Below are positions 27 through 62,692 of a DNA stretch of 64,000 nt, piece by piece. Position 1 is the first letter of the stretch. Each line of letters opens with the position of its first letter. The notes under the pieces are model-generated. The model was not told the origin of the DNA, did no database searches, and worked only from the letters and a program-made list of their open reading frames with translations. The position numbers and the translations under genes are program-made. The stretch lies in the sequence record NC_070967.1; one strand, 5' to 3'.

Positions 27-63
27 TAGGTTCACTTCACGTCCTTAAGGGATTCTTCTTTGA
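27..63 (+). promoter_or_regulatory. Bipartite promoter-like cassette, copy 1
   Basis: TAGGTTCACTT-N12-GGATTCTTCTTTGA, then SD AAGGAGG and ATG at 84. Confidence 0.8.
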
Positions 64-83
64 AGGGTCGAAGGAGGCCAGCT

Positions 84-356
84 ATGTTTTACACGATCAA
101 GAAGAACTCTGAGAATTCGGACTATAAAATCTCGTCGTTTAACGACTATGAAACTCATCCGAACAATACCTATGAATTGAAAGTCAGAGGTAGAGCAGTC
201 TATTGCAATTGTCCTGCAAGTAGACATGCTTGTCGTCACGTACAAATGTACTGGCGTACTAAAGAACAGAGTCTCCTTGATAAGCCTAACCTCATCGACT
301 TCACTAGCAATAGTGAAATGATTGTCAAACCTATCAAAGCTTTCATCGTGGAGTGA
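84..356 (+). CDS. SWIM-type zinc-finger protein
   Basis: YCNCP...ACRHV (CxC-x-CxH); start moved to ATG 84 behind SD AAGGAGG. Confidence 0.65.
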   Translation: MFYTIKKNSENSDYKISSFNDYETHPNNTYELKVRGRAVYCNCPASRHACRHVQMYWRTKEQSLLDKPNLIDFTSNSEMIVKPIKAFIVE

Positions 357-359
357 ATC

Positions 360-584
360 ATGGCTAAGCATACATGCTGCTGGGTAATCCGTCCTGCTTC
401 CTATAATAAGGAGACTGGTGAATCTGTTAAGGCTATCTATTGTGGTAAGCCTGTACGCTACAAGATTGAAATTGACGACGATATGAATAAACGTCGTAAG
501 TACAACAATCTTTGTGATACTCATCAGAAAGAGTCTGATGAGATTTCTAAGAATAATCCAGATGATGATTGGGATTTTACCTGA
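360..584 (+). CDS. Small Cys/His-containing hypothetical protein
   Basis: ORF packed between neighbours; CC, YCG and CDTH motifs. Confidence 0.6.
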   Translation: MAKHTCCWVIRPASYNKETGESVKAIYCGKPVRYKIEIDDDMNKRRKYNNLCDTHQKESDEISKNNPDDDWDFT

Positions 585-608
585 TCATCTACAGTAAAGG
601 AGAGTAGT

Positions 609-1124
609 GTGAAACTTATCGTAGCTGTTAGTCAGAATGATGTCATAGGTACAGAGTTGAATGGTAGACATATCATTCCCTGGAGTCTACCTTCTGATAT
701 GGCTAGATTTGCAAGATTGACAAGTAATCATACTCTGATATGTGGAAGGAGGACTTATGAATCTCTACCTTCCACTTTTGAATTAGGTAATCGAGATATT
801 ATCATTCTTACTAGAAAGAATAGAATGAAATCTTCTGATCCTCGTATTCGTTATGCGAGTAGTCGAACTGACGTCATGGAAATGATTCAAGGAGAGGAAG
901 ATCGTACTGCAGTCATTGGAGGATCTGAAGTTTATGCTCAGTTCGTCGATGATTGCGACGAGGTATGCATCACATTCGTTCAAGTAGAAGTTGAATACGG
1001 TACAGCATATTTTCCATCGAAGTTCTTGAAGTCAAATGGATGGACTCCGATGCTTACTCATATTGAACGTCATGTTGACGATGAGTACGATACTGTATTC
1101 CAACATTACAAGAGGTCGTCATGA
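609..1124 (+). CDS. folA: Dihydrofolate reductase
   Basis: IVAVSQNDVIG, IPWSLPSDMARFARLT, CGRRTYESLP, LGNR, VIGGSEVY; SD AAGGAG. Confidence 0.95.
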   Translation: MKLIVAVSQNDVIGTELNGRHIIPWSLPSDMARFARLTSNHTLICGRRTYESLPSTFELGNRDIIILTRKNRMKSSDPRIRYASSRTDVMEMIQGEEDRTAVIGGSEVYAQFVDDCDEVCITFVQVEVEYGTAYFPSKFLKSNGWTPMLTHIERHVDDEYDTVFQHYKRSS

Positions 1125-3048: not shown

Positions 3049-3052
3049 ATGA

Positions 3053-5773: not shown

Positions 5774-5779
5774 TCATCG

Positions 5780-5814
5780 GCCCTCATCTATGAAAGTAGG
5801 TGAGGGCTATTTTC
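5780..5814 (+). terminator. Putative intrinsic terminator
   Basis: GCCCTCATCTA-TGAAAG-TAGGTGAGGGC followed by TATTTTC. Confidence 0.7.
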
Positions 5815-6407: not shown

Positions 6408-6444
6408 TAGGTGCAGTTAGGTCCTTCGAAGGCTTCTTCTTTGT
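6408..6444 (+). promoter_or_regulatory. Promoter-like cassette, copy 2
   Basis: TAGGTGCAGTT-N12-GGCTTCTTCTTTGT, hairpin AAGGC/GCCTT, SD GCAGGAG, ATG 6494. Confidence 0.75.
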
Positions 6445-10110: not shown

Positions 10111-10152
10111 TAGGTGAACTAGAGCTCCCTAAGAGATTTCTTCTTAGGGAGC
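10111..10152 (+). promoter_or_regulatory. Degenerate cassette copy overlapping a perfect 10-bp inverted repeat
   Basis: TAGGTGAACTA-N12-AGATTTCTTC; GCTCCCTAAG (10124-33) / CTTAGGGAGC (10143-52). Confidence 0.55.
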
Positions 10153-10185: not shown

Positions 10186-11436
10186 ATGAAGAATGCTCAT
10201 ATCGTTATTGGTGCACAATACGGAGATGAAGGCAAGGGTGCCACTGTGAATCTCCTTGCTCAGAAATATCCAGATGCATTGAATGTCCGATTCAATGGTG
10301 GAGCTCAAGCAGGACATACTGTGACACTTGAGGATGGTCGTCGTCACGTATTCTCTCACTTTGGATCAGGTACTCTCCAAGGACTGGATACGTATTTCAA
10401 CGAGTCCTCCATCGTGAATCCTTGGAGATTCAAGGATGAGCATACTGTAATCATGAGTGAATTCGGTCTGAGTCCTCTTGTTTTTGTACATGAGAATGCT
10501 CTGGTCACATCGCCTTACGATATGGCAATCAATCAACTCTGGGAGACTTGCCGTAGTGGAGATCGTCATGGATCCTGCGGTATGGGTATTTATGAGACAA
10601 TCCTGAGATCTCGTAAGCCTGAATCTCTTGTACGAGTCCATGAACTAGTTTATCATGTATTTGAAGACATCAATGATCGGTACAAAGAATATGCGTATCG
10701 TAGACTTCAGGATGTCAGGGATTTTCATCCTGATTGTGAAGAGTTCATTAAGGATACTGAGAAATTTATTGATAGTGAAGATGTTACTCGTCAGTTCTTT
10801 CTTGACTACTCATTCTTCATGTCAATGATTAATGTCGTTAAAGACGATATTAATATCTATCCGCAGTACGATACTGTGATCTTCGAAGGAGCTCAAGGTC
10901 TCCAACTCGACCAGAATTATGTTGAGTATCTAGGTAATCTGCCTCATGCTACTCCATCCAATCCTGGACTAGGTAACAAGTCACTCCACGATGCATTCGA
11001 GAAGTATGGTCTCACTGAAGACCATATTCACGTGTACTATCTGACGAGATTCTATCAGACTCGTCACGGTAATGGACCATTCGATCGTGAGGTTAATCCT
11101 GACGCTCTAGGCGACATTGTTGATCTCACCAATATCGACAATCCTCATCAAGGATCGATTCGGTATGCTCCACTCAATGTCTTTAGTCTACTCGAAGCAG
11201 TACTGTTCGATCTTCAGTATATCGATAACTGCAGACCTTATCTGGTGGTCACATGTGTTGACCAAATTGTCAACGATGAAGTTGTCATCAAAGCACTGCA
11301 TGATGACAGTCACGTTAAGATTCCATTCGAGGATTTGAAGATGATCCTACGTGATAACTTTGAACTCATGTACGGCATCTTCTACTCTGATGGAAAGTCT
11401 ATGAAGTACGAGGAACATCTTTATGACGCAGCATAA
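10186..11436 (+). CDS. purA: Adenylosuccinate synthetase-like protein (divergent PurA family)
   Basis: GAQYGDEGKG, RFNGGAQAGHTV, IFEGAQG, TRHGNGPF; the canonical GTT-x-GIGP loop is replaced by GSCGMGIYET. Confidence 0.85.
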   Translation: MKNAHIVIGAQYGDEGKGATVNLLAQKYPDALNVRFNGGAQAGHTVTLEDGRRHVFSHFGSGTLQGLDTYFNESSIVNPWRFKDEHTVIMSEFGLSPLVFVHENALVTSPYDMAINQLWETCRSGDRHGSCGMGIYETILRSRKPESLVRVHELVYHVFEDINDRYKEYAYRRLQDVRDFHPDCEEFIKDTEKFIDSEDVTRQFFLDYSFFMSMINVVKDDINIYPQYDTVIFEGAQGLQLDQNYVEYLGNLPHATPSNPGLGNKSLHDAFEKYGLTEDHIHVYYLTRFYQTRHGNGPFDREVNPDALGDIVDLTNIDNPHQGSIRYAPLNVFSLLEAVLFDLQYIDNCRPYLVVTCVDQIVNDEVVIKALHDDSHVKIPFEDLKMILRDNFELMYGIFYSDGKSMKYEEHLYDAA

Positions 11437-13917
11437 ATCTGAAGGAGATCAGCTCGAAGAAGCTATCGCTGAGTACTTCACGCAGAAGCGTCAGGGAACG
11501 GAATTTGATACCAAGAATCCATTCAAGAAGGAGATTCAATTCGAGAAGAAGACTAAGACTATCTGCATTGCTGAGGATGTAGCCCATCGTGGAGGAATGA
11601 CAATCTGGTATGACGAGGATCAGATGATTCCTAATATACGTCAACTCTCCATTCGAGAAATCGAGAATCTCGAGAAGAGTCTCGGAGCAAGATTATTCGT
11701 ATCCTCTCAAGAGCATGCTGATGCAGTCATCCGCCCTAATCTCGATAAGTGCAGAAGATACCTATCTGTGATGCTTCATCCTAATAAGGCTATGGAGTAT
11801 CTAGGTCAGCTTCTCCTGTATCTTCAAGATCTCCATCCGGATGATCATTGTAGAGCTTATGAAGATGCTCTCTCATTTTATAATCATCATAATCCGTATC
11901 AGAGAGTAGAACCTACTGGTCTAGGCTTTACTCGTCTCGTACAACCTTCCTTGTTAGGAGATGATAGTGAATCGCGTTGATAAGATTAAAGCATTGGATA
12001 ATGCTACTGAATGCAAGTGGTACGTCGATATAGCATTTGATGCAGGTACTGCAGAAGCTCGTACCATGATGTACGGTTCAGAAATGAATCGATGGAAGTT
12101 CAGTGGATCACCTGATGATCTTGACGAACTTATCGACAATTCTCTCCAAGCTGCTTATGAAGAAGTAGTAGAGCATAAAGTTAAGCTGTACTCTGATATG
12201 CCTTGTCATGATTTTCTACCAGATGATCGTAATCTGATGAACTCATACGATAATGCATCTTTCCATAATCTTGAACATCTGTGGGTAGGACTATGAGCGA
12301 ATTTGAACGTATTAAACCTGAGGATATTGATGTCGGTGTATACATCTGGTACGGTGGACAGATGTCAGTATCTGGATGGGACTGCCCAGGTATCATCTAT
12401 GAGGTCAATGAAGAGGAGCAATGGTTCCGTATCCAATCTCTAGACGATCTCAATAAGAATGAACAGAAGTATGAGTTCGTACCTGATGACCGTAGTGCTA
12501 CGTCAAGTCGCACGATCCGTAAGATCGATCCTCGAGATGCTCTCGACTACGTTCGTAAGATGAAAGATCGTCGTCACTCTGATGTAGGTGACGCTGAAGA
12601 ACGTCTTCGTAAGGCTAAAGAGTCAGCACTGACGTTCCAGGTATTCTTTGATAATATGAAGAAAGAGATTGAGCATGCTGAATCTGTCTGAGGTTAAGGT
12701 AGGAGACTACCTATGGATGGAATTTGAATTCGAAGATGACTATCCTGGACGAGAGGATATTGATGAACCTCTCAGAATTATGGCAATCAATGGAAATGTT
12801 CTTCTAGTAATGTACTTGAAGAGTCTCTCAGGTACCTTACGATCGATTGATCTCGATACGATTCATTCTCGTACTAAATTGTACAAACCTACTACTGACA
12901 AATTGAGATCATTCTTACTTCATCTTGCTGCTAAGACGAGAGATCGTATTGAGGCTCTGAAGAAAGAGAAGAGTGACAACGATGTTCTCCTCAATAATAC
13001 TCGTAGCATTCTCAAAGAATTGATGGAATCAGATGATGCAAGCAAAGCTACCGTATGATCTTGTGATTGACAATGACACTATGTGGTTCGCAGGAGATGA
13101 TGTCAAGTTTGAATGCCATGTATGGAGTGACGGATCTATGTCCATCATGATACATCGAGGTACTGAATCTGTTCTTCTCCATTTTGATAACATCAGTGAA
13201 GCTGAAAAGTCAGGATGGAATGTATGATGTATAATACGAATCTCGGATTTTGGGTAGATCTTAATCAGATCGCTATGGTTAGTGAGTTTCTCAAAGGACG
13301 AGATCATCATTCGATTAAATTCTGCATATTGTACAAATATAGCTCTCAAGAAATATGGTACGAGTACGGAGTATTTGGTGACTCTACTCCGTACTTTATT
13401 CAGAAGAAGATGTATGAAGCATACAGGAAACTGAATGAAGCTTACGATTACAATGAGATACCGAAGTTTACGACTGAGTTCTACCTCGAGATGTTTGAAG
13501 ACTTGGTAGAGTCTATCGAAGAGCATCTTATCAACCTCATCAATGAAAAGATTAAGCACGATGCTAAGTAAGAGATTCTATGATACTGGGATGGGATTCT
13601 ATGTGGATCTCGAGCATATCCAAGCAGTTTCTAATGCTCAGGATACTCATCGATATGGTGAAGTGTGTTTCTCGATAAAGTACATGATGGGTGCAGGTAA
13701 TCACACATTGTATAACTTTAGTACATACTATGGTGATACTGAATTCGAGAAGGAAGTACTCGCAGCTACCAGAGCACTTTCAGACTCTCCTGAATGGAGA
13801 AAGCTTACTCAGGATCCTGACAAGAGGAGAATGCTAAGTAGAGTTACGATACCTATTCTCCAAAAGTACATTGACAGGATGTGGGAAGCTAAGAGCGAAT
13901 TCCTCTCATCACAATAG
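11423..13917 (+). CDS. Run of seven hypothetical CDS (11423-11980, 11961-12296, 12293-12691, 12675-13058, 13033-13227, 13215-13571, 13561-13917)
   Basis: Overlapping junctions; the last two share an N-terminal motif. Confidence 0.7.
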
Positions 13918-13951
13918 GTTCACTTAGGGTCCTAAGAGGATTCTTCTTTGA
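13915..13951 (+). promoter_or_regulatory. Promoter-like cassette, copy 3
   Basis: TAGGTTCACTT-N12-GGATTCTTCTTTGA; the TAG is the upstream stop codon; hairpin GGGTGC/GCATCC. Confidence 0.8.
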
Positions 13952-14597: not shown

Positions 14598-17139
14598 GTG
14601 AATGAAGTGAAATCAGAGATCTCCCTATCGGACAAGTCTGTTAAGGAGATCGACCAGATCATTCTTGAGAGATGTCACGAGATCGAGAGTGAACATGATG
14701 GAATCGACCATGATGTAGCTCTAGCTCAAGCGACTGAAGAGATCGTCAAGAAACTGTCTGAAGAATTTCGAGCAGTCTAATGCTGGAAGTGCTCAGCTTT
14801 AAACTAGTAGCTACGGGTATTTATTATATCCGTAGCAGAGGTACCGAAAGAGTAGGTAGTAGATTCTACGACACATCATATGTCAATGAGTCTACTGCCA
14901 ATCTTTTAAAGGATTTTCTCATCAAACGATGGGAAGAATGTCCAATTGAGCGAATTACCGACCTAAGAGACTTCTTTGTTATACCTCATGGGCATATCTC
15001 CTTCTCATCTATGACACCTAAGGAATTATTTGACTCACAATTTAGTCGATTCAAATTTGGTACATCTAAGATGAAGAGAAACGTTATGAAACATCTAATT
15101 GGATTGTATCCAGATTTGAAATAGTACTAATGAGCTTTACGCATAAAATTATCTTTATTGTAGTTATAGTTTTGACGATTGGATTTACTTCATTGTTCCT
15201 GTTCGACGAATCCATGTACTACCCATCAAATAGGTTGAGACAAGTATGTAGACCTGTTTCCCAGAACAAGTGTGCGATTTATATCTACGAGGTCAAATAA
15301 TGAAAGCTAAGCATGTCTCTGATGAACGTAAGCTCTATGATCTCTGTAAGGAATTCATCGAGGAGCAATTTATCCATGACAAGGATGATGCTGAATGGGT
15401 CACTGAAGATGACAAATTTAAGTTCATCATGAAAGTTTGTGAGATCGTAGGATTCAAGGAATTGGTGAAATGAAATTACTAGGTGAGACTATCGAAGTCA
15501 CTACATCAACTGTCTTCAAGGGTGAGCTAGGTACTGTTATCGAACAGTCGAGAACTACTCTGACAGTAGACTTCGATGGTCGCATCGGTAAGTATGATCT
15601 GTTCAAGAATGAGTTCATCGTCTACAAGAACTTCAAACTCGAGAGACCAGTCGAATTGATCAGTCTCAAATCTATCGAAGGAGAACCAGTCTATGCAAAG
15701 TACTCAGAACGAGTCGTGCGACCGATTAAGTGTTAAGAGACCTGATCCTATGGTCTCTCCTAGTCGTCCTCTCACGAATGATGAGAGATACCATCTCATC
15801 AAAGCTTCTCAGAGGACTCAGTCGGATTATCCTAAGGTACGTCTCTGGTATGAATACTTCAGAGACAGTGGTCAGTGCAGCATGATGGATACTCAATACG
15901 TTATCTCGATCGCTATCACAGCGATGATCCAAGATGAGCTCGAATCCAATGAAGTATGATCAGAATTTATACAGCAAATACGGATACTGGATTAAGTCCG
16001 ACGGTACAATTCTATACTTGGACTCGATCTACGGTCACAACGATCTCGCTAAGGAGAGTGGTGACTTCGATCCAAGTATGTCTGGTCATGACTGCTATTC
16101 TGCAGCTATCGACAGTGGATGGATTCGGATCAATATCAGTGCGTATACTGCAACATGGGGACTTCATTGGAACTATGCTGAAGCCAAGATCACTGATGAA
16201 GCAGTCAAGGGATTCAAGCATCTGATTAGATTGCATGGACCTCATGAAGTCGATACTGGTGTAGCTCTCCAGATTCACTACAAAGATGCGATCGAACTTA
16301 TGCAAGGTCGGATGAGCATCGATCAATTGAATGAGAAAATCAAGAAGAAGGAAGATGAATATTACTGACACTATTTCATGGTATCTCACGTTTGTTACTA
16401 CTGTATCTTATTTGATGATACTGGTTGTAATGCGAGTCCATTACATTCATAATTATTCAAGAGATACAAGATGGTACTATGCATCGATGATGATCATCTT
16501 TAGTATTCAAGGTACGGTCGGATTGATGCTTCTCATGATTCACAATGGAGTTATTAGATGAAAAGATACAGAGAGTGGCGATATGGATTCCGAATAGGTA
16601 CCAACTATTCGGAGTTATCCAATGTCAAGTCAAAGTGGAGGATCTGGATTCGTATGTGAGTCCATGAGTCCTCAGCGCATGCCTAATATGAAGGCATTCA
16701 AACCATTCTGCTTGTGCTGTGTAGGTAAGGTATATCGTAAGGGATACGTTCTCAGCAAAGCTAAGTCTCGATTTAAGAATCGTCGACTTCATCGCGGTAA
16801 GCCTCGTTATAAGGATCATCGCGCATAATGTCTAGGACCACGAGACTCTGCAAACCTTATATCATTTACTACAATTACCATAACCTCGGAGATCCTGATC
16901 CTCGAGATGCGTCTCAAAATGGACGTGATGGTAGTAAGTACAAGAGTGCACTGTACGACGATTACATTAAACAACCTGGATGGTCTCGAGATCATTATGT
17001 TGGCATGAGTATTCGTCGTAGTTGCAAGAAATCTGCTCGTCGTCATCGTCGACGTGAAGATCTTCAGACTGTCTGCAAGGAGATTCTGGAGTACTTTCAT
17101 GACGACGAATTCAGCGTTGATGAGCCTTCCTCTTTGTAA
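14598..17139 (+). CDS. Run of small hypothetical CDS (14598-14780, 14780-15124, 15130-15300 membrane, 15300-15473, 15470-15736, about 15750-15959, 15949-16368, 16355-16561 membrane, about 16622-16828, 16828-17139)
   Basis: Tight stop/start coupling; some starts uncertain. Confidence 0.6.
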
Positions 17140-17156: not shown

Positions 17157-17199
17157 AGGCCTCATTTAGTAGAAATGCTAGATGAGGCCTTTTCTTTTA
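17157..17199 (+). terminator. Intrinsic terminator
   Basis: AGGCCTCATTTAGTA-GAAA-TGCTAGATGAGGCCT followed by TTTCTTTT. Confidence 0.85.
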
Positions 17200-17215: not shown

Positions 17216-17791
17216 ATGAATTACAACATTGACACGACTGAAGCAGAGCTACGAGAACAGCTTCAGCAGAAGAATCGTGAGATAGATCTGAAGTCACCTG
17301 ATCTTCCCGATTTCACAATCAGCAAGAACATGAAGAAAGATCGGGATGATCTCAAGAAGTATCTTTACTTCTTGATCAGTAATCAATCCGATTTTGTCAA
17401 GACACTTTACAAATACAGTGACAAGACTATGGAGATGACAGTCTCTTCAGACGAGTGTGGATGGAGACCTAAGTCACATATCTCTCGTGTCGTATGTAAC
17501 TTGAATCTGAAGACTCTTAAAGTCACGTACGAAGCATATGAGACTTCATTTGGTATTCTCAATTCATATGCGAATCGTCCAGTTGAACATAAACTTATAT
17601 TCAAGTACAAGTTTATTATTCCTCCATCTGCACTAATGAAGCTTACTGAAAGATTCGAGAATGCTGCATGTGAGTGTATGAAGAAGCTCGAGATCGATCG
17701 TGAGATTGCTAAGAAGAAGCAAGATGAGAAGGATCGTCTACTCGGACTGATTGACTTTGAGGTAGAGCAACAATTAAATCGTAAGTCGTAG
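17216..17791 (+). CDS. Hypothetical protein
   Basis: SD GGAG; its stop is the TAG of cassette 4. Confidence 0.7.
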   Translation: MNYNIDTTEAELREQLQQKNREIDLKSPDLPDFTISKNMKKDRDDLKKYLYFLISNQSDFVKTLYKYSDKTMEMTVSSDECGWRPKSHISRVVCNLNLKTLKVTYEAYETSFGILNSYANRPVEHKLIFKYKFIIPPSALMKLTERFENAACECMKKLEIDREIAKKKQDEKDRLLGLIDFEVEQQLNRKS

Positions 17792-17825
17792 GTGCAGTTA
17801 GAGTTCTCGAGGGATTCTTCTTTGA
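17789..17825 (+). promoter_or_regulatory. Promoter-like cassette, copy 4
   Basis: TAGGTGCAGTT-N12-GGATTCTTCTTTGA; hairpin CTCCGA/TCGGAG; SD AAGGAG. Confidence 0.8.
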
Positions 17826-20633: not shown

Positions 20634-20670
20634 TGGGTGCAGTTGTGGGCTCAGAAGGATTCTTCTTTGA
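20634..20670 (+). promoter_or_regulatory. Promoter-like cassette, copy 5
   Basis: TGGGTGCAGTT-N12-GGATTCTTCTTTGA, A-rich upstream tract, two leader hairpins, SD AAGGAG. Confidence 0.8.
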
Positions 20671-20756
20671 AGGGGCTGGAATGGTTCTACCCTTCTGGTA
20701 AGCTCCATCTTACGCACAGGATGGAGTAGATTGTTGATTGTGCGTTAACAAGGAGA

Positions 20757-21089
20757 ATGGAAATGTTCGCAGTTTATGCTCGTACGACGAAGGATGGTAC
20801 CGATCATATCGAAATGTATGAACGGAAGCAGGATCGCAACTTCGTCGAGACCATGGACCAGATGTCCAAAAACTATGGTCACAAGATGCACAAGGCTCAG
20901 GTCTTCGAATCGGAGGAGAATCTCCGTGAGTGGGTCAAGAAGGAGCTCGGTGCTAACTGGATCACGCTCCTGGACAAGACGATCGAAGATCAGAAGAAGG
21001 ACCATCGTCTGAAGGGCAATCGTGGTGATACGGCTCCTCAGAAGGCAGCTGATGCCAAGAAGGATTCTGGTCAGTCTGCAAGCAGGTGA
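20757..21089 (+). CDS. Hypothetical early protein (single-gene unit)
   Basis: Lies between cassette 5 and a terminator. Confidence 0.75.
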   Translation: MEMFAVYARTTKDGTDHIEMYERKQDRNFVETMDQMSKNYGHKMHKAQVFESEENLREWVKKELGANWITLLDKTIEDQKKDHRLKGNRGDTAPQKAADAKKDSGQSASR

Positions 21090-21113
21090 TCCTGACCAGG
21101 ACTCAGCAATATC

Positions 21114-21151
21114 GCCTAGTGGAGAGCAATCTTCACTAGGCCTTTTCTTTT
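21114..21151 (+). terminator. Intrinsic terminator
   Basis: GCCTAGTGGAGA-GCAA-TCTTCACTAGGC followed by CTTTTCTTTT. Confidence 0.85.
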
Positions 21152-22603: not shown

Positions 22604-23672
22604 AGATGATTATAAATAATGTCCTTCAGTCCTTAGATAAGATACCTGAAGCAATATTTGAGTATCTGCTAGTTGATTTGAATGTATTTCATGGCAAAGG
22701 ATATCTTGACGTAGAAAGGATGATGAATGACTATCTGCGTCAAGCTAAGTATCAGCGTAAGCTGCTAGTCATCACAATTCCTGCAGCTGATCTCAAAGTC
22801 AGATGGAAGATCGATGCTTACAATGCTAGAGACTATGAGATTCCTTTATGGACAGCACCGTATTCTCGATCTGTGTATCAGTTAGCTCATATCGTTGTAG
22901 CTTATGGTGACAGGATTGTTCTCATCAAAGGTCGACCTGATCGTAGACATGATGAGAGAATCAAGTACGAGATTCATCAACAGATAAAGATGCTTCAAGA
23001 TAATTCTAATTAAGCCAATTCAGCGGTCAGGAGCCTTCCTCGTTGTGAGGTTCCCTATGGAGACTATCTGTGACTCTTTCCATTCATCCTAGAATCATTT
23101 ACTTTCAGAACATTGTAGCAGAACATCATTCGAATCTCGAAAATGATTGCTCTATGTACAGAGTCATCAATGGAGATTTCTACATTAAGGTAGATCATAA
23201 GACCAATGAGGTATATGATATTCCGAGAGGTGACGGTACATCTCGTAAAGACAGATTGAAGATTGAGTATACAGGTCCATTCCCTACATGGTATGACTAC
23301 AATGGATTGCTAGCTCATGCTAAGAAAGCACTGATTGATGATAGTGTCAATGATGCTTATCGTAAGTACGAGAATGGTGAACCTATCTGTACTCAGAAGA
23401 ATTTCGTTGAGACTAATGAGTATTTCACACTCCACGGTATGATCGGAGCATCTAAAGTTTACTATGGTGCTCGTGGATACGAAGCAGTAGAGTGGTCAGC
23501 GTATGTAACACCATATCCATTCAGGACTGCTGAAGAAGCTCAGTCTACTTTGACAGGTAAGTATGCTGATCCTCCTCCTAAGAAGATAAGAGATATCGTT
23601 ATTACTCATGTCAAACGACGGACTACGAAGACTGTCGAGACTGAGACATCAATCATTAAGGTTAAATCATGA
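22600..23672 (+). CDS. Two hypothetical CDS (22600-23013, 23070-23672)
   Basis: Coupled or SD-preceded ORFs. Confidence 0.65.
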
Positions 23673-25835: not shown

Positions 25836-26288
25836 ATGGATCGCAGACTATTTTTAACTTCATTAGCTTCTACATTATTACTTTCTTCATCTCCTGCATT
25901 TTCTATTCTAGAAAACAATATGGTCGAGGTACCTGAACTCAGAAAGTTAAGATACCGACAGATCATTAATCGCATTAGAGATGCTATCCTCACATCCTAC
26001 CTCGATACAGAGGAAGAGTCAGATAAGACTCAGAAGCGTAAGTATATTGCGAGTTACGCTACCAATTTCCTGAACTACTACAAAGACAATCGCATCATCC
26101 ACAACTACGGAGCACTTGTCTACAATACGGTTCAATACGGTACTTTCACTCCAATGAGTGAGGAGACTGTCGTATCAATCTGTGTTGAGCTGGTGAAAGA
26201 TGTTAAAGTCTACATGATATTTGCTCCGTACTATGTCGAAAGAGATCCTGATCTTGTACTAGCTGAGCAATATACCTCGACACAATAG
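25836..26288 (+). CDS. Twin-arginine signal peptide protein with a tail-sheath C-terminal-like segment
   Basis: MDRRLFLTSLASTLLLSSSPAFS; NFLNYYKDNRIIHNY...VSICVELVKDVKVYMIF. Confidence 0.55.
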   Translation: MDRRLFLTSLASTLLLSSSPAFSILENNMVEVPELRKLRYRQIINRIRDAILTSYLDTEEESDKTQKRKYIASYATNFLNYYKDNRIIHNYGALVYNTVQYGTFTPMSEETVVSICVELVKDVKVYMIFAPYYVERDPDLVLAEQYTSTQ

Positions 26289-26322
26289 GTTCAGTTAGCG
26301 TCCTGAAGGGATTCTTCTTTGA
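26286..26322 (+). promoter_or_regulatory. Promoter-like cassette, copy 6
   Basis: TAGGTTCAGTT-N12-GGATTCTTCTTTGA; TAG is the upstream stop; SD AAGGAG, ATG 26357. Confidence 0.8.
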
Positions 26323-26356
26323 GTGAGGGTTGGCCTTGCGATTAAAGGAGAGTCAA

Positions 26357-26960
26357 ATGTCAGGTAGTGTGTTCGTATTTAAAGCAGGAGTCAAGGAATT
26401 CGAGAGTCTGTGCGAGCAGATGGAAACTCAGGATGTTGACTTCGTCGTCCGTGTCGATATCAATCAGAACAAGACTCTGCTTGTTGATGATCTGATCATC
26501 GCTCACCTTGTAGGTGAGGAATCTCACATCTACCTTAACATCTGAGGAGACGGTCATGGCACTTGGTCATACGATCTTCGAGTACTCTGCATTTGTACTC
26601 GAGAGAAACAAGATGAAACTCTCGAATGTAGATCTTGCGACTACACTTCAGCAGATTTACTATACGGATCTGACTGTCTACGGATACACTGGAGTTCTGC
26701 TCAAGGACGAGAATGAGAAGGATGTCATTATCCACGATATCATTCTCCAGGATGAGCAGTCGTTCTTCAATCACACAGGATATGTCCGACTTCCTGAACT
26801 ACTCTCAAAATATCACAGTCTCTTGAATAAGACAATTGGACATGATTTCGTCAAGTTGCATTATCGAGACGGAAGATGGTATGATCCTGCTGAGCTTACA
26901 AGCATGCCAGGATACGTTGATGGCGCTCTACTGGAGCATCTGAGAAAATGTGACTATTAA
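26357..26960 (+). CDS. Two hypothetical CDS (26357-26545, 26556-26960)
   Basis: SD-preceded ATGs; followed by a terminator. Confidence 0.7.
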
Positions 26961-26964
26961 CGCT

Positions 26965-27008
26965 ATGCCGTATCTGGGATGAGGGTCCTAGGTACGGCAT
27001 TTATTTTT
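26965..27008 (+). terminator. Intrinsic terminator
   Basis: ATGCCGTATCTGGGAT-GAGG-GTCCTAGGTACGGCAT followed by TTATTTTT. Confidence 0.8.
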
Positions 27009-29218: not shown

Positions 29219-29242
29219 GGTGTATAAAGGATTCTTCTTCAG
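29206..29242 (+). promoter_or_regulatory. Promoter-like cassette, copy 7
   Basis: TAGGTGCAGTT-N12-GGATTCTTCTTCAG; hairpin AGGAAG/CTTCCT; ATG 29293. Confidence 0.8.
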
Positions 29243-34178: not shown

Positions 34179-34215
34179 TAGGTTCACTTAAGGTGAAGGA
34201 AGGATTCTTTCTCAG
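34179..34215 (+). promoter_or_regulatory. Promoter-like cassette, copy 9
   Basis: TAGGTTCACTT-N12-GGATTCTTTCTCAG; hairpin AGGGA/TCCCT; SD AAGGAG, ATG 34252. Confidence 0.75.
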
Positions 34216-35180: not shown

Positions 35181-35942
35181 ATGCGTAAGTATAATATTGC
35201 ACTGGCAGCTGCATACTCGCTCTCTGCCGTACTCTTTTCCTCAACTGCATCTGCTGCCACATGTGGTGGTCAGGCATGGTCCTGGGAATCCTTCCTGAGT
35301 GGAGCATGTAAGTCTACAGGAGTCTCCAATCCTGGAGATAACAAGCCTCAGCCTGGAGTACGTGGATCAGTACGTACTGTCTCGAGTGGATTCGCTCCTT
35401 CGAATGGATCATCTCCGTCGACATCTCCATCGACTGGCGTCTCTGATCCTGGTACCGATAATCCTGGTGACAATCATGGCAATCCTGGAGATGATAATCC
35501 TGGTCACGAGAATCCAGGTGATGATACTCCTGGTGGCGATGATCATGGAAATGATAATCCCGGACATGACAATCCGGGTGGTGATCACAATGACGATGGT
35601 CACAACGATAATGGCGACAATGGTAACCATGACAACGACGATAATGGGAACCATAACGATGACGACAATGGTCACAATAATGATCATGGAGATCATGATG
35701 GTGACAATGACTCTGGCAACAATGGTCATAACAATGATCATGACGGTCCATCTGGTGATCATAACAATGATGGTCATAACGACAATGGCCAGGATAATGG
35801 TCACAATCAGGATCAGTCTGGTAACGACGATAATGGCGGCGATCAGCCTTCTAATAATGAAGGCTCGAACAGTGATCACGACAACGATCACAACGACAAT
35901 GGTCATGGTAATGATGGTAAGGGACCAGGCAAAGGTAAGTAG
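35181..35942 (+). CDS. Secreted low-complexity Asp/Asn/Gly/His-rich protein
   Basis: Signal peptide ...LFSSTASA; repeated NPG(D/H)D and DGHN(D/N) units. Confidence 0.85.
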   Translation: MRKYNIALAAAYSLSAVLFSSTASAATCGGQAWSWESFLSGACKSTGVSNPGDNKPQPGVRGSVRTVSSGFAPSNGSSPSTSPSTGVSDPGTDNPGDNHGNPGDDNPGHENPGDDTPGGDDHGNDNPGHDNPGGDHNDDGHNDNGDNGNHDNDDNGNHNDDDNGHNNDHGDHDGDNDSGNNGHNNDHDGPSGDHNNDGHNDNGQDNGHNQDQSGNDDNGGDQPSNNEGSNSDHDNDHNDNGHGNDGKGPGKGK

Positions 35943-42406: not shown

Positions 42407-43337
42407 ATGTTAAATATCAACAGGACATATTATGCTCTGATCACAGAGAGTGGAGACATTCTCAAGGGATCTCAATCAATGCTGAATGGATTGTATGACT
42501 CTCATGCTAAAGCTACTAGGTACAAGAAATCTCTCATTGATAAAGCTAAGCCGTTCAGTAGTCAAAGTACTAGTCCTCACAAACATCTGTGGGATCCTAG
42601 GAATACAGCAGAGTGGGATAAGACTCTGGAGACGTATGAGTCTCTTGAAGTCACTCCTGTCAAGATTGTAAAGGATAAGGTAGAATGATCCGAGGACGTA
42701 AGAGTATCAAGAATGCAGCGACTGATGCATGGATGACAGAGTATGGTAGTCTAGAAGGACCTGGATATCCTGTCTGGAAGTTGTACGACATTCCTGAGAT
42801 CATGAGTACTGCTAGTCGAATCATGGACGCTACTCGTAAGGAGTTTGTCAAGAAGTCGAAGAGTAGTGAGCTACCACAAGTATCATATATGCTGCAAGCT
42901 AATGATGAAGGTGTGTACATAGAATACGAAATTAGATAGGAACAGATATGTCTGAATATAAATCTCCAAGCACTATCATTAAAGAAATTAACTCCTCAAA
43001 TGAGTCTGCTGTAAAAGACTGGGTTGAATTTCAATCTGGTGTAAATACTAGTCGTCTCATGAATGCAGGATTTACACCTAACAATGAGACGTATCAAGCA
43101 GCATTGAAGTACTTCAATCTAAGTCCTGTGATTCCAGATTGAGAGATTAATATGTGCGTACCTAAAGATGAACATGAGACTGCATACAAGCTAGCTCGCA
43201 AGCACTACGAGGCTCAGGATCCTACTGAACGAGACTCATTCCAGAAGCATCTAGGTGATGCGTACCAACATCTCTTGTCGAAACGAAGAGGTCCTGGTGA
43301 GGAGAGTGATCCATATGCATACAATAGCTTCTGGTGA
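42407..43337 (+). CDS. Four hypothetical CDS (42407-42688, 42685-42939, 42948-43142, 43152-43337)
   Basis: Packing and SD sites. Confidence 0.6.
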
Positions 43338-43359
43338 GGAAAATAAAGTCGTAGCAAAA

Positions 43360-43398
43360 TGGGGTCGATCGACGTCTTCGAGAGATTCTTCCTTGGAG
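43360..43398 (+). promoter_or_regulatory. Degenerate promoter-like cassette
   Basis: TGGGGTCGATC-N12-AGATTCTTCCTTGG with A-rich upstream tract and downstream GAGAATTGT, as in other copies. Confidence 0.5.
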
Positions 43399-43445
43399 GG
43401 TCGTGGTTGGTCCTTCTTGAGAATTGTTTTTGACTGGAGATTGTG

Positions 43446-44054
43446 ATGTCTGTCTTGCTTGAGATTGTTGGTCCTCCGATTGGATCCAAGAAATCTTGGT
43501 TGACTCTGGATCTGGAAACTGAAAAGATCTTCGGATCCTTCAAGTGGGGATCTGGTGAGAAGAATGGTCGTCGATGGCGACCCTATGCTTGTGGAATTGG
43601 TCATCAATCGGACAATCGTCTTGAGATCTGGGTCAAATCTTCGTTCGATGAATCGGAGTTGATGGACTGGATTGCTGAAACTCTCCTCGTCTGCGGATCC
43701 AATGTTCGTGATGTGGTCTTTCAGAATTCGAGAAATCGATTTGATGAAATGGTCTGTGCTGGACGTTTCATTAATGCTCGTCGTCCTCCGACTCGTCTCC
43801 CTGGATCCTGGCCGATCCTTGAGATTGATCCTCCGATGGTCTGGAAGAAAACTCCTCGGACCGATCGGATTGAGATTCCGAGAAATGAGGTCGACGGGAT
43901 TGGTGGTTCTGCTGATCTTGTTCGTCGTGGAGATCTCGATCCTCTCCGCCATTGTGGTCGGGATGTTCTTGAGAATCTCTGGAATCTCGAGGATTGTCCT
44001 TCTCTTCCTCCTGAGTGGGTCGACTTCTGGAAATCTCCATTCTCTGCTTCCTGA
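43446..44054 (+). CDS. Hypothetical protein in a TA-depleted island
   Basis: SD GGAG before GTG/ATG; longest + frame; only two TA dinucleotides seen in the ORF. Confidence 0.65.
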   Translation: MSVLLEIVGPPIGSKKSWLTLDLETEKIFGSFKWGSGEKNGRRWRPYACGIGHQSDNRLEIWVKSSFDESELMDWIAETLLVCGSNVRDVVFQNSRNRFDEMVCAGRFINARRPPTRLPGSWPILEIDPPMVWKKTPRTDRIEIPRNEVDGIGGSADLVRRGDLDPLRHCGRDVLENLWNLEDCPSLPPEWVDFWKSPFSAS

Positions 44055-44114
44055 TTCTGAGTCCTGGGCCATGACTTAAAACTGGTCCCTATTTTCATAG
44101 CTAAAGGTAAGATC

Positions 44115-44610: not shown

Positions 44611-44647
44611 TAGGTTCACTTAGCCTCCTCGAGGGATTCTTCTTTAG
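44611..44647 (+). promoter_or_regulatory. Promoter-like cassette, copy 10
   Basis: TAGGTTCACTT-N12-GGATTCTTCTTTAG; hairpin AGAGG/CCTCT; SD AAGGAG. Confidence 0.8.
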
Positions 44648-44688
44648 AGGGTCCGGATCGTCTGGGTCCTCTGGAAAAGGAGAATCGT

Positions 44689-45571
44689 ATGTCAATGGCT
44701 GTGTCTCTGTATCGTGCTAAGTATTCTAGCAAGTTCGCAGGATCTGGTGAGTTCCCGATCTATGCTTTGAACCTGAAGGATGCTGAGGATCGTGCTGAGA
44801 AGATCTTCTTCCTCATGAATGTGAAGGTCGATGGTGATACCTTCACATCTGAAGTCGCTCTGGTTGAATTCTGAGGAGAACGATCTTGTACATTAATGGT
44901 TGGATGACCAATGTCAATGTGAGTGAGATTGCTCAGACCAAGAAGTTCATCGAGGAGAACGATGGTCTCGATCTCAAGGTCGATACGACTGGTGCTAATG
45001 GTCCTGAGTACAAGTGGACCCAGTACTGCGATGACGATGAGGACATGGTCAAGATCGCTGCGGTCATGATGTTCTACAACGATCGTAGTCCTGAGCAGAT
45101 CGAGGAGTTCAAATCTGATCTCCGTGAACTGATGAAGAAATACGAGAGGATCTAAGATGCTGAGTTCAGTCGAGAAGAATATCGTCGACAACTACCGTCA
45201 CCTGTACGGTAGGACCTACGGATCGATGCCTCCTGCTCTCCTGACAGATGAGAGGATCTGGGAGATCTACGACAAGGAGATAGGTGTGATGCCTACTGGT
45301 CAGATCCAGGATGAGGAAGTCCTGATGTCAATGCGAGAGGATCTGAATCTGGATGCAAGTCGTCCTGATCTCGGATGGAAGCCTATCGCTAAGAAGACTC
45401 GACTTTCTAGAAAGGGATCATCCAATGTCTAAAGATTTCTTTGGAGATGGTCTTGTAGCAGATGAGATGCGTTCTCGATACGGTAGCGTATGGGACAATC
45501 TTCCATCTGTCCTCAAGACATCCATCATCGCAGGACTGATCATCGGCATCTGTGCAGGATTGATCAGCTAA
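44689..45571 (+). CDS. Four small CDS (44689-44874, 44886-45155, 45157-45432, 45425-45571 membrane)
   Basis: SD sites; ends at a terminator. Confidence 0.65.
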
Positions 45572-45578
45572 CAACTAT

Positions 45579-45614
45579 GGGTAGTATGCCGAGAGGTATG
45601 CTACCCTATTTTTA
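45579..45614 (+). terminator. Intrinsic terminator
   Basis: GGGTAGTATGCC-GAGA-GGTATGCTACCC followed by TATTTTT. Confidence 0.8.
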
Positions 45615-46420: not shown

Positions 46421-46457
46421 TAGGTGCACTTGAGGTCGTAAAAGGATTCTTCTTCAG
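46421..46457 (+). promoter_or_regulatory. Promoter-like cassette, copy 11
   Basis: TAGGTGCACTT-N12-GGATTCTTCTTCAG; hairpin; GAGAATTGTCTTTAAGGAGAA leader. Confidence 0.8.
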
Positions 46458-46503
46458 GAAGGGTTGCCCTGGTAGGGAACTCGAGAATTGTCTTTAAGGA
46501 GAA

Positions 46504-46996: not shown

Positions 46997-47033
46997 TAGG
47001 TTCAGTTAGGGTCCTAAGAGGATTCTTCTTCAG
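46997..47033 (+). promoter_or_regulatory. Promoter-like cassette, copy 12
   Basis: TAGGTTCAGTT-N12-GGATTCTTCTTCAG; hairpin GGGCT/AGCCC; same leader as copy 11. Confidence 0.8.
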
Positions 47034-47081
47034 GAGGGCTTGAAGAACCAGCCCAGAGAATTGTCTTTAAGGAGAAATGCA

Positions 47082-59000: not shown

Positions 59001-59037
59001 TAGGTTCACTTAAGGTCCTGGAGGGATTCTTCTTTGA
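59001..59037 (+). promoter_or_regulatory. Promoter-like cassette, copy 13
   Basis: TAGGTTCACTT-N12-GGATTCTTCTTTGA; hairpin GGAGC/GCTCC; SD AAGGAG. Confidence 0.8.
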
Positions 59038-59075
59038 AGGGAGCGTTGTGCTCCGAGTCTTTAAGGAGAATTGTC

Positions 59076-61859
59076 TTGAGGTACAAGTTCGAGCATCAGT
59101 CCGTAATTCCTGAATCCGACTTTGATCCGGATGGACTGGACATTATCTGGATCGACGATACCTATGCGTCGGCAGATAGCTTGGATACGATTTCCAAGTA
59201 CATGTGCTGCGAAGTCGATGAGATCCAGCAGTATACTTCTGTTGAGGAGATCTGAGATGGCTAAGCTTGATCGTGCAAAATGGCCTACTCTGGCTAAAGC
59301 ATTTGATGACTACGGACATTCGTATAAGTTCGACGATATGTTCGATGCGAAGGTACGTAGCGACAGTAACTACGTAGTCCTCTGCTGGAAGATCGACGAG
59401 GATTTCTATGAGATGGCTGATCTCGCTAGTGATGGGAATGGTAATTGGGAGATGCAGAACGACATGTTCGATGGCATCAGTCTCAAGCAGTGGAAGTCCC
59501 TGAAGATCACTCCTCAGTGTGACTGGTTTACTTACGATGGGGACGGTAACTAAGATGATTCTTCTCGTTAGAATGTTCTTATTCTCAGTTCGGATCTATG
59601 AGTTCTTCACTGGAGACAAGTCAGGTCTCGAAGTCCTCATCAAGGTACGTGAGGATAAGTGGGACAAGTATAAGTCTGATCTCCTGAAGGATGGATTCGT
59701 CTTTCATGAGATCGATGGAACAATTCGTGTGACCAATGTAAAGTTCAATGGACGATACGTTGAGGTCATTGCTACGAGAGAGGATGCAGCATGAATGGTC
59801 TCGAGAAACGTCGAAGAGATGCAGTGACGTATCGTGTCAAGTATGAGAATGCACTTGATCCTCGTAAGATCAAACGATACGAAGCTCATCATACTGATCC
59901 AGTACATTGGGCGTACGTCGAAGGATGTGATGCTGGATACTTCAAGTATGGTAATCGTAATCCCTATCCTCCTGGTCGTCGTCATGACGAATACAATCGT
60001 GGATATGAAATCTCAAAGGATGAAGCATAATGGCTAAGAATAAGCAGGACAAGAATAATACTCTTGTCAACTTCATGGATGTCTTCAATGATATCTCTGA
60101 GGAGAATCGTCGGAAGGATAATGAGTATCTCAAGCTTCGTACTGAGTCGTTTGATAGTGACTGCGAAGACATTATCAAAATGAGCGACTTTGATCTCATC
60201 GACTACCTCAGCTCTTATCGAGGATATAGCGATCCTCGTATCGTTGAGATTGAAGGTAAGCTTAAGGAGGTAGCATTCAATGAAGCACTCAGGAGGATGA
60301 AACGTGGCGATCAAGCTTGATGCTCGTATGGGAGAGTATACTGGTCGTCAGGGTATCTCCTATCTGTTCAAAGATGAGAAGGGATATCCTCACCGTCTTG
60401 CAGCAGCTGAGATTAAGGACATTGATCTCAGTGATCTCGTACCTGGTCATAAGGTATGGCTGGAGAACTGGAAACATCATGGTGGCATCACTCAATGGTA
60501 TGCTACTCCTAGACACATATAAGGAGACTATCATGCAACATCGTTATGTGAATGAACGTAGGATACCTGAACCAGTCACAGGATCGGATATGGTATCTGC
60601 ACTCATGAGCTATTGTGAGGAGTACAATGTCGAGATCGAAGATATCGTCATCCTCGCAGATAAGATGGATGCTGATGTAGGTCATATAGCTGATGCTATC
60701 ATTATCTGCACTCGTCATCTCGGAGACGAGGTGGATCCCTCCTAGTCCCCAGGAGGACCCTTCGTGGAAACTAACTCAAAATAAAGCATAAAAGGAGCAA
60801 AGAAATGTCTTTCATCATGGCGTGGGTCACATTGATCCTCGTCTTCCTTCTGTACTGCGTAGGTATCATAACAGCGGTAGCTATCTTCTTTCTACCATAT
60901 ATTTTGATCGGTATCGTTTCTTATTTAGTCGTAAGAATCCTTACTAAAGCTGCCAAGTAGGAGACGTGGATGAGCATGAAATTTCAGGAAGGTATGCACT
61001 TCAAATTGGAAGGAGCTACTCTGAAAGGTAAGAATAGGATTCGCGATAACGGATCTGAATGGCAAGTAGTCAGTGTCAAGGATGGAGAAGTCCTGTTCGA
61101 ATCTGTTCTGACAAGCTATCTGAAATGGCATCCTCTCAATGAAGAATCTGACTTCACTGTAGTTGAGAGAATGCAGGATGTCGAAGATATGAATGACTCG
61201 ATCGAAATCGAAGGTCATTTCCTATAAGGAGTAACGAAATGCAATTCGAAGTCAATCTGAATAACTATCCTGTTATGCGTAAGGCATTTCAGTTCATCGA
61301 GGTAGACAATGGTGCAGGCATTATTCCTGGAGTACCTCTGAAGAATTCATATGTCGTTGATCTGAGTGATGAGTCTGCACTCGAAGAGATGTACGGTATG
61401 CAGTCATTCTCTGATAATGGTGCAGGTGCTCTCATGAATGCTGTTGAGGTCACTCTTGCTCAGATGAGTGATGATGAACTCCTCACTTTCTGTACAGGTG
61501 GTGATCATGAAGTCAAGATGATTGCTGAGAAGTACGAGTATGGCGCTATAGCTAGTGAGTTTCTGGATGCATGGTTCGAAGGTCACTTCGATGAAACTCC
61601 GAGATTCACATGGCATCAGGTCTGGTACTTCACTAAAGTTTATCCTGAGACTGTTACTCCGGATGAAGCATATGAAGCATGGGTCAAGGAGAATCCTGAC
61701 CCTAATGGCATGACAACCTACAACGAGGAAATATGGGAGGGTGATGAGTCCTGGGTTAAGTCAGTTTGTAGACTACTTCGAGTTGAACTGACTGATTACA
61801 TTCCACCACCAAAGGATGAAGGTGATGAACCGATCAATACTGAGAAGGTTAACCAGTGA
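59076..61859 (+). CDS. Run of hypothetical CDS (59076-59255 acidic, 59257-59553, about 59556-59794, 59791-60030, 60030-60320, 60304-60522, 60533-60745, 60805-60960 membrane, 60970-61227, 61239-61859)
   Basis: SD sites and coupling. Confidence 0.65.
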
Positions 61860-62053
61860 GGAGTACGAAATATCTGGTCCAGAGAAATACTGGATGAGAT
61901 TGTACATATTGCCGATAGCTTCTATCTATTTTATATCGGCAATACTTCTATTTCCATTCTATGGACCGTCTATTTTCAGGACGGTCCAGGATATGATCAA
62001 GAGTCACTTCAATAGTTAGTAACGAGTTGATGCGTTTGAGTATTTGAATAAGT

Positions 62054-62092
62054 GGCTCTAGGCGAATCATTGTGCCTAGAGCCTTCCTTTTT
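62054..62092 (+). terminator. Intrinsic terminator
   Basis: GGCTCTAGGC / GCCTAGAGCC followed by TTCCTTTTT. Confidence 0.75.
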
Positions 62093-62117
62093 ATTAGAAT
62101 AACATTGAAAGTTTAAA

Positions 62118-62636
62118 ATGCAGTCTTTTGGATATACAATACTAGCTCTCGTAGTAATTCTTATTCTCTACAAGATCATCAGATCACTTATCGTTCATGA
62201 GCAGAAAGCATCTGAATCAACCATTGACAATGGATACAATCTTCCGATCAAAGAAGCAGTTGATACGTCGATCAGTACGAGGACTACGACGTCTACTGCT
62301 ATACGTCGTCAACCTGAGCATCGTAGACAGGAAGTCAAGTCTGAGAAACGTCAGTCATATGACAATGATACGGTTGCCACTTCATACGATGATAATTCGG
62401 ATACTGTAACTGCTGCAGTTATCTCAACGATCCTCTCGATTGAATCCAACAATTCTAGCTCGTCTCATTCAGATCATTCAAGTAGCTCGTCGTCTTCTCA
62501 CTCAGATACCTCGAGTAGTTGGTCGTCATCTCACTCGGATAGTTCATCTTCTCACTCATCGTCTTACGACTCAGGATCGTCCAGCTCATACGACTCTGGT
62601 AGTAGCACGTCAGACTCTGGTGGTGGAGGATGGTAG
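62118..62636 (+). CDS. Membrane-anchored protein with Ser-rich low-complexity tail
   Basis: N-terminal hydrophobic helix; SSSHSD/SSSYDSG repeats ending GGGGW. Confidence 0.8.
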   Translation: MQSFGYTILALVVILILYKIIRSLIVHEQKASESTIDNGYNLPIKEAVDTSISTRTTTSTAIRRQPEHRRQEVKSEKRQSYDNDTVATSYDDNSDTVTAAVISTILSIESNNSSSSHSDHSSSSSSSHSDTSSSWSSSHSDSSSSHSSSYDSGSSSSYDSGSSTSDSGGGGW

Positions 62637-62655
62637 GCGAATTTATTTTAACGAA

Positions 62656-62692
62656 TAGGTTCACTTGAGGTCGTTAAGGGATTCTTCTCTGA
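62656..62692 (+). promoter_or_regulatory. Promoter-like cassette, copy 14
   Basis: TAGGTTCACTT-N12-GGATTCTTCTCTGA; hairpin; SD TAGGAG, ATG 62730. Confidence 0.8.

Follow-up and report, generated by a model that had tools for sequence, protein, structure and literature searches.

Introduction

Promoter classes specific to a phage are already known. The Bacillus phage SPO1 possesses the sigma genes gp28 and gp33/34, and its early promoters are of the host type. The middle promoters of phage T4 combine a MotA box with the canonical sigma70 -10 element TAnnnT by sigma appropriation, the upstream box being the phage-specific part. Hairpin promoters with a 5-7-bp stem and a 3-nt loop are found in phage N4, which carries a gene for a giant virion RNA polymerase. 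The multisubunit RNA polymerases of the jumbo phages phiKZ and AR9 consist of split beta and beta-prime sets and use short AT-rich promoters, those of AR9 being read on the template strand (PMC7598289, PMC5449584). The promoter-early stem-loop (PeSL) cassettes of T4-type phages contain sigma70 promoters close to the consensus (TTGACA-N17-TATAAT or close) with an AT-rich upstream tract and are concentrated in hyperplastic ORFan regions and at sites of indels between close relatives. In the work of Arbiol et al. (2010, PMC2839356) and Comeau et al. (2014, PMC4122927) their stem-loops, located between the -35 and -10 elements or over the -10, proved to be terminators of transcription. Here we describe a repeated two-box element, termed class 1, in a 64,000-nt stretch of DNA (the window) that is identical to positions 1-64000 of Rhizobium phage RHph_Y65 (NC_070967.1; hereafter Y65). 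The comparative sequence analysis suggests that the class-1 copies are probably promoters of one temporal or functional class of this phage, with structured 5' leaders. In the searchable literature we found no description of the class-1 sequence, of a sister class found along with it or of the phage group carrying both, nor anything on transcription in the family Kleczkowskaviridae.

Phage Y65 belongs to the genus Cuauhnahuacvirus of this family and infects Rhizobium phaseoli. Genes on the + strand of its 206,821-bp genome run from position 1 to about 158.7 kb, starting with about 180 small genes, most of them unassigned (the early arm), followed by nucleotide-metabolism, replication and transfer RNA (tRNA) genes. 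The structural and lysis genes occupy the - strand and run leftwards from 206.7 to 158.7 kb (the late arm). The DNA polymerase is of the PolA type and the phage is not T4-type. Gaps between genes, summed from the annotation tables, make up about 7% of the window.

The class-1 motif is rigidly spaced, strand-specific and under selection

An earlier note on this DNA had listed 16 copies of a two-part motif, and a pattern scan together with a weight matrix found all 16 at the coordinates given. The pattern, allowing up to three mismatches, matched 13 times, always on the + strand, compared with 0.00 matches expected from 100 shuffles. The weight matrix was built from 14 copies, leaving the degenerate copies at 10111 and 43360 outside the training set, and recovered both of these as well as the copy at 34179. 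Applied to the whole genome, a check that had been proposed earlier, the matrix found 19 copies, all on the + strand and in a single orientation with the genes: 16 in the window and three outside it (107830, 141881 and 153447), with no - strand match and no match scoring between 10 and 17 bits. The late arm contains none of the 19, and 16 of them lie within the first 63 kb. Every copy is intergenic or extends no further than into the final codons of the gene before it, and in five cases (13915, 17789, 26286, 31425 and 107830) the TAG of the motif is the stop codon of that gene. The motif is hence not spread equally over both orientations and inside genes, the distribution that had been named as speaking against it; isolated single boxes do occur inside genes on both strands, at about chance level.

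The motif starts with the hexamer TAGGTK (positions 1-6), followed by 17 bp, GGATTC (positions 24-29, continuing with TTC) and a G/A 6-7 nt later. Within the 17 bp lies a variable spacer that had been described as invariantly 12 nt long; its length is exactly 12 nt in all 17 copies with at most one mismatch in each box, and the two degenerate copies display the same box offset in the matrix scan. As claimed, the copies precede a Shine-Dalgarno site and a gene, with the start codon 21-93 nt after the motif (median 39). The copy at 59001 fits this distance only through an unannotated open reading frame (ORF) at 59076-59255 on the + strand. This ORF has 59 codons, a TTG start and an AAGGAGA ribosome-binding site, and the stretch is kept in the closely related phage TM61. 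Taken by operon, 16 class-1 copies head operons of the early arm and three head operons of the replication arm, namely those of gp251, DNA ligase and the RNA polymerase beta-prime subunit.

Comparison of Y65 with TM61 (96.4% identity overall) over 16 orthologous copies revealed no change in 320 box positions and two changes in 192 spacer positions, with flanks differing by 5-9% (P = 7e-6). The class-1 boxes are therefore under purifying selection. The scans thus bore out the description of a two-part, strand-specific and gene-proximal signal with rigid spacing that is neither a sigma70 nor a sigma54 pair. The three copies outside the window, a second motif family and the conservation of both families in distant relatives had been missing from the earlier note.

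A second two-box family and other expression signals

Counting of k-mers revealed a second two-box family, AGCGAA-N13-AGCCTTCCT, with a spacing of exactly 13 nt. It has about 20 copies, with few exceptions on the + strand at 62-149 kb, and these are found ahead of genes for replication, among them gyrase and the DNA polymerase operon. Copies also lie 10-17 nt before tRNA genes (128654 and 136584), which argues for a promoter and against translational control. A promoter whose start lies a few bases past the box would suit this position; a translation signal is excluded there. Weaker copies are found in the window at 17104-17131 (box at 17123), 23013-23040 (box at 23032) and 62061-62088 (box at 62080), further weak ones at 52994 and 57069, and outlying copies at 159903 (- strand) and 206574; about 17 copies in all lie outside the window, the others of them at 64-149 kb.

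Consensus sigma70 sites show no enrichment in the window (43 compared with 48.5 expected), and so something else must drive the class-1 operons. The gaps between late genes contain TATAAT- or TAAGTAAT-like boxes. Gaps with neither motif family often hold clear intrinsic terminators, with long GC-rich stems and T runs (5779-5808, 17157-17190, 21114-21141, 26965-27000 and 45579-45606 in the window, and about 65750-65795 in the genome), none of which overlaps a class-1 copy. These terminators split the early arm into short units, as seen in the motif-genes-terminator series from 20634 to 21114, from 26286 to 26965 and from 44611 to 45579. A terminator immediately upstream was rejected as a general trait of class 1, as it was found at only 2 of the 19 copies. 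The motifs provide an operon map for about 180 ORFan genes and, by prediction, compact, orthogonal expression signals for Rhizobium.

The beta-prime module and conservation in distant relatives

The gene gp335 (genome 154425-157808) encodes a full-length RNA polymerase beta-prime subunit of the bacterial type, with 1127 amino acids. Its match to bacterial beta-prime in the PDB has an E value of 5e-152 and an identity of about 33%, and it contains the NADFDGD motif as well as zinc sites. The class-1 copy at 153447 heads the operon, and the gene lies within a four-gene module that is conserved in uncultured relatives. Short beta-prime homologues with identities of 55, 53, 50, 41 and 40% were found only on metagenomic contigs from Logan and ENA; a protein search of IMG/VR anchored on beta-prime yielded nothing, and walking from the contig of the 55% relative gave no extension. 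The order conserved in the relatives is DNA polymerase A, a protein of 215-248 amino acids (the gp337 family), beta-prime, a protein of about 65 amino acids, one of about 230 amino acids and then convergent late genes. Compared with gp333 (genome 158125-158715), its homologues in the relatives have about 40 additional N-terminal residues, and in Y65 a gap of 115 nt lies upstream of this gene; its annotated start may be too far downstream.

Related two-box elements occupy the site of copy 153447, before the gp337-like gene, in the beta-prime relatives. The Y65 element reads TGGGTGCAGTT-N12-GGATTCTTA; the counterpart in a relative with 63% gp337 identity (L029) is TGGGGTAACTA-N12-GGATTCTTC, in which an enclosing stem is kept through a compensatory change; those of L030 and of L040 and L037 are TAGGGTCTACT-N13-CGGTTCTTG and TTGACG-N17-GGGCTTC, respectively. 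Across the relatives with 40-55% identity such elements are found at orthologous sites before the gp337-like/beta-prime operon and the ligase and gyrase genes, with a spacing of 17 bp, or 18 bp in one case. In the 41% relative, further copies precede the ligase gene, as does the Y65 copy at 141881, and gyrase B. The downstream boxes of the lineages are related (GGATTC, CGGTTC and GGGCTT) and the upstream hexamer is lineage-specific (TAGGTK, TGGGGT, TAGGGT and TTGACG). The AGCCTTCCT box of the second family is likewise kept in three beta-prime lineages, occurring before the DNA polymerase operon in the 55% relative, and eight times on the + strand and never on the - strand in the 41% relative (overlapping loci L035 and L040-L042, about 49 kb). 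This recurrence in relatives indicates that both families are old features of the phage clade.

The class-1 motif had no match in IMG/VR, and the 11 metagenome and 10 GTDB genome contigs with a match were singletons from unrelated taxa at chance level, none of them in Rhizobium. As genomes of Rhizobium and other bacteria do not contain the motif except for chance singletons, it does not represent a host promoter class.

Structure of the leaders

A hairpin had been proposed to follow most copies directly. The 32 nt after the motif are more structured than GC-matched genome windows, with a mean of -8.4 kcal/mol versus -5.0 kcal/mol (p = 6e-6) and an energy of -6 or lower in 13 of the 19 copies. 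Compared with dinucleotide shuffles of the same sequences, however, the z value was -0.43 versus -0.16 for the controls (p = 0.08). As the shuffles fold almost as well, much of the stability is compositional, and there is no fold common to the copies. A single conserved RNA fold for the element was ruled out, the stems differing in place and size from copy to copy, and an Rfam scan of the window matched no family.

In the copies at 153447, 107830, 10111 and 6408 the spacer can base-pair with the nucleotides that directly follow the motif, in a stem that encloses the downstream box; matched spacer and post-motif sequences pair more stably than mismatched ones (p = 0.009). Altogether a stem around the downstream box is found in 4-6 of the 19 copies, and a T run is lacking in most. 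The mini-palindromes reported for the spacer proved marginal and not significant, with at least 6 bp in 7 of the 19 copies versus 20% expected (p = 0.065). Pairing of TTCTTC with GAAGGG as a conserved mini-hairpin was also considered and set aside, being inseparable from plain conservation of the initial transcribed sequence. Around the ribosome-binding site, several class-1 leaders also have a conserved module in common, GAGAATTGTCTTTAAGGAGAA, which extends the cassette to about 90 nt (window 31465-31480, 43415-43440, 46480-46500, 47050-47075 and 59055-59075).

Comparison with described promoter systems

The class-1 geometry is sigma-type, and its sequence is not that of a sigma70, sigma54 or extracytoplasmic function (ECF) promoter. 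The 17-bp spacing agrees with housekeeping sigma70, whereas the hexamers TAGGTK and GGATTC are not TTGACA/TATAAT-like. The GG (-24) and GC (-12) of sigma54 promoters lie exactly 10 nt apart; 12 nt after the GG at motif positions 3-4 there is only variable spacer. The suggestion of an ECF-like sigma factor was not upheld, as the boxes are unlike an AAC-type -35 and a CGT-type -10 and none of the proteins tested matched a sigma factor. Two boxes over a variable 12-nt spacer also differ from the single block of about 20 bp (-17 to +6) of T7-type promoters. The N4 type disagrees with the non-significant spacer palindromes and with the lack of any ORF above about 1200 amino acids.

The layout of the copies resembles that of PeSL cassettes, to which they had been likened. 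In both cases, cassettes of about 40-100 bp recur between the genes of an early region rich in ORFans, point in the same direction as these genes and end in a ribosome-binding site and a start codon; some Y65 copies have a stem-loop between the boxes or around the downstream box, and a few indels adjoin copies. The likeness does not extend beyond layout: the defining sigma70 consensus and the T4-type context are both missing, an enclosing stem is present in only the minority of copies given above, and most copies have no T run. Evidence for a class-1 role in gene shuffling is thin.

Like SPO1, phage Y65 probably possesses several temporal promoter classes of two-box geometry with a non-host consensus and T-rich elements at the -10 position; unlike SPO1, it has no sigma gene among the proteins tested, and its early-arm class is itself non-canonical. 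The T4 middle promoters share with class 1 a class-specific upstream box at a fixed distance; in them, as is proposed for class 1, conserved machinery reads one box and a phage-specific factor the other. The downstream box of Y65 is non-canonical and yet kept across lineages, in contrast to that of T4, and no MotA or AsiA homologue was seen in Y65. With the jumbo phages Y65 shares a phage-encoded homologue of a catalytic subunit of cellular RNA polymerase and promoter motifs that are not sigma70-like. It differs from them in its single intact, full-length beta-prime, with no beta detected among the large unassigned proteins tested, and in its long two-box motif. As a probable phage-specific promoter class, class 1 is set apart from most by this module with its solitary beta-prime and by a downstream box that persists over deep divergence: the downstream boxes are kept at a beta-prime identity of only 40-55%, and all the relatives share the module around a lone beta-prime that is catalytically intact as far as its sequence tells. 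A testable question arises, namely whether host RNA polymerase is rebuilt by a phage with its own beta-prime and a new specificity subunit.

Proposed mode of action and alternative explanations

The best reading of the class-1 set is one of early-class promoters with 5' leader hairpins. We propose that TAGGTK, 17 bp and GGATTC would be followed by a discriminator-like TTCTTT, with transcription starting at the G/A of positions 36-37 or 2-3 nt further. A start at the terminal G/A, as predicted earlier, fits the sigma-type geometry, lying 6-7 nt after GGATTC. The transcripts would begin with GAAGGG and in most cases immediately form a hairpin at the 5' end, before a strong ribosome-binding site, and these hairpins may stabilise the 5' end. 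The reader would be an RNA polymerase with a phage-determined specificity factor and not the unaided sigma70 holoenzyme of the host. For the reading of the conserved downstream box, suspicion falls first on the conserved beta-prime module, and the proteins next to beta-prime are the obvious candidates for the specificity factor.

The search for such a reader was performed with Pfam and PHROGs on 10 early proteins, with Pfam on the beta-prime neighbours and 10 more proteins, mostly large unassigned ones, and with a PDB sequence search on gp337 and gp333. The idea that the phage encodes its own sigma factor or RNA polymerase is upheld in part, by the beta-prime subunit gp335; no sigma factor, beta or single-subunit RNA polymerase appeared among the proteins tested. 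A T7-like single-subunit enzyme is neither annotated nor present among the large ORFs tested, and the beta-prime neighbours revealed no detectable family and no confident fold match with Pfam, the PDB and structure models. The gp333-family model (predicted local distance difference test, pLDDT, 37) was unusable.

A number of these and other observations weigh against promoters of phage-determined specificity. No protein tested by Pfam, PHROGs or the PDB, in a scan that was not exhaustive, matched a sigma factor, and no large unassigned protein tested by Pfam matched a beta subunit; the gp337-family model reached a mean pLDDT of only 62 and had no PDB fold match at E <=0.001. The hexamer at the -10 position has neither the A at -11 nor the T at -7 typical of the sigma70 family, unless a one-base register shift is assumed in Y65 only. 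A phage factor, if the early genes need one, would have to be injected or made from another promoter. Moreover, the pyrimidine-rich box pairs with purine-rich downstream sequence including the ribosome-binding site, and a role at the RNA level is thus possible. Alternatively, the unmodified host holoenzyme, with a lax Rhizobium sigma70 or an alternative sigma, might read the class-1 promoters with no phage factor, in keeping with what is expected of immediate-early genes. Early genes normally depend on the host RNA polymerase, two hexamers separated by exactly 17 bp make up the geometry, one distant clade has the canonical -35 TTGACG as its upstream box, and an 18-bp register would give Y65 the hexamer GATTCT with A at -11 and T at -7. 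However, TAGGTK agrees with TTGACA at only 2 of 6 positions, the invariant bases are not known from any host consensus, and the motif was not found in Rhizobium genomes. The region of host sigma70 that reads the -35 is highly conserved, whereas the upstream box varies between the phage lineages. This variation, the conserved host domain and the absence of the motif from hosts together favour phage-determined specificity, which remains the best-fitting reading, and we consider the unaided host enzyme an unlikely reader. About equally doubtful is a more specific proposal for a clade of soil phages, Cuauhnahuacvirus and its uncultured relatives, in which transcription would be taken over through the exchange of one subunit: the phage-made beta-prime might join host beta, alpha and omega together with the gp337 and gp333 families, and would read two new promoter classes through the pyrimidine-rich boxes GGATTCTTC and AGCCTTCCT at the -10 position. 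Because class 1 would also drive the beta-prime operon, it would on that proposal be a lineage-specific early or auto-amplifying class.

The class-1 sequence might instead act as RNA, either as a processing or stability signal or as an anti-Shine-Dalgarno-like box that masks the ribosome-binding site in read-through transcripts. Here pairing of UUCUUCUU with AAGGAGAA is possible, the box is joined to the ribosome-binding site in several minimum-energy folds, and both the spacer complementarity in a subset of copies and the compensatory change in the L029 stem point the same way. Two conserved boxes at a fixed distance over a variable spacer are nevertheless the signature of a protein-DNA contact, neither a common fold nor an Rfam match was obtained, and the sister family stands directly before tRNA genes, where translation control would be meaningless; an RNA-level function is thus improbable. 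Of similarly low probability, or slightly lower, is the view that the copies serve chiefly as linkers for recombination or as the ends of mobile cassettes, as understood for PeSLs or morons, or else as operators of a phage regulator, with promoter activity incidental or absent. A TM61 deletion ends at 46420, adjoining the copy at 46421, a Y65-specific insertion ends 21 nt before the copy at 43360, this copy and gp110 are missing from the related phage TM39, and the motif provides the TAG stop of the upstream gene in the five copies listed above. The overall association is weak, with 2 of 22 Y65/TM61 breakpoints near a copy versus 0.47 expected (p = 0.08), and no Y65/TM61 indel is bounded by two copies. 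The copies are in contrast kept at orthologous sites before core genes (ligase and the beta-prime operon) across deep divergence, which indicates expression signals rather than mobile ends.

Class-1 copies, units and neighbouring features in the window

All copies and terminators described below are on the + strand. The first copy (27-63; 0 mismatches, 63 bits) closely follows the AT-rich end of the genome record and precedes gp001, with its ATG at 84. The copy at 6408-6444, upstream of gp014, has two mismatches, and its spacer pairs with the post-motif sequence at -13.3 kcal/mol. The degenerate copy at 10111-10147 (17 bits) has a stem of about 12 bp around the downstream box and precedes the adenylosuccinate-synthetase-like gene gp019. 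No mismatch is present in the copies upstream of gp027 (13915-13951, with the gp026 stop as its TAG) and gp038 (17789-17825, with the gp037 stop), the latter followed by a 5' hairpin. The copy at 20634-20670 (one mismatch) heads the one-gene unit of gp045, which ends at the terminator 21114-21141 with a 12-bp stem and a T run. The unit of gp058-gp059 is headed by a copy without mismatch (26286-26322, with the gp057 stop as its TAG) and closed by the terminator 26965-27000, a 16-bp stem followed by TTTATTTTT.

Three mismatches are found in the copy upstream of gp066 (29206-29242), which has the gp065 stop codon within the motif, and one in that upstream of gp072 (31425-31461, with the gp071 stop as its TAG); the copy upstream of gp081 (34179-34215) scores 46 bits. 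The degenerate copy at 43360-43396 (35 bits) precedes gp110, and the unit formed by the two (window 43319-44105) is present in Y65 and TM61 and absent from TM39. Insertions of Seg-like homing endonuclease genes are found at other places in TM39 and TM61, namely behind gp005 and behind RtcB. The copy at 44611-44647 (two mismatches) heads gp112-gp115 with a strong 5' hairpin (-15 kcal/mol), and its unit ends at the terminator 45579-45606, a 12-bp stem followed by TATTTTTAT. The copies upstream of gp118 (46421-46457, adjoining exactly the end of the TM61 deletion) and gp119 (46997-47033) have three mismatches each. The copy at 59001-59037, without mismatch, follows a terminator just upstream and precedes the 59-amino-acid ORF, and that at 62656-62692 (one mismatch) precedes gp170.

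Some neighbouring genes deserve mention. No Pfam support at E <0.01 was found for gp084 (35181-35942), annotated as 'transcription termination factor Rho protein'. The RefSeq name of gp019 (10186-11436) is 2-aminooxy adenylosuccinate synthetase (PurZ-like); PurZ and PurA were indistinguishable in a PDB search, and the gene, used as an anchor to the early regions of relatives, gave no close relative in the database. An HD-type deoxynucleotidase gene adjoins the PolA-type DNA polymerase gene (genome 148349-152349). Together with the PurZ-like gp019 it hints at modified (2-aminoadenine) DNA, which would be relevant to promoter melting. The genome end just before window position 1 (206690-206821) is very AT-rich and internally palindromic, and holds CTGACT, 17 nt and TATTAT upstream of the first class-1 copy, possibly a host-type promoter or a replication or packaging signal.

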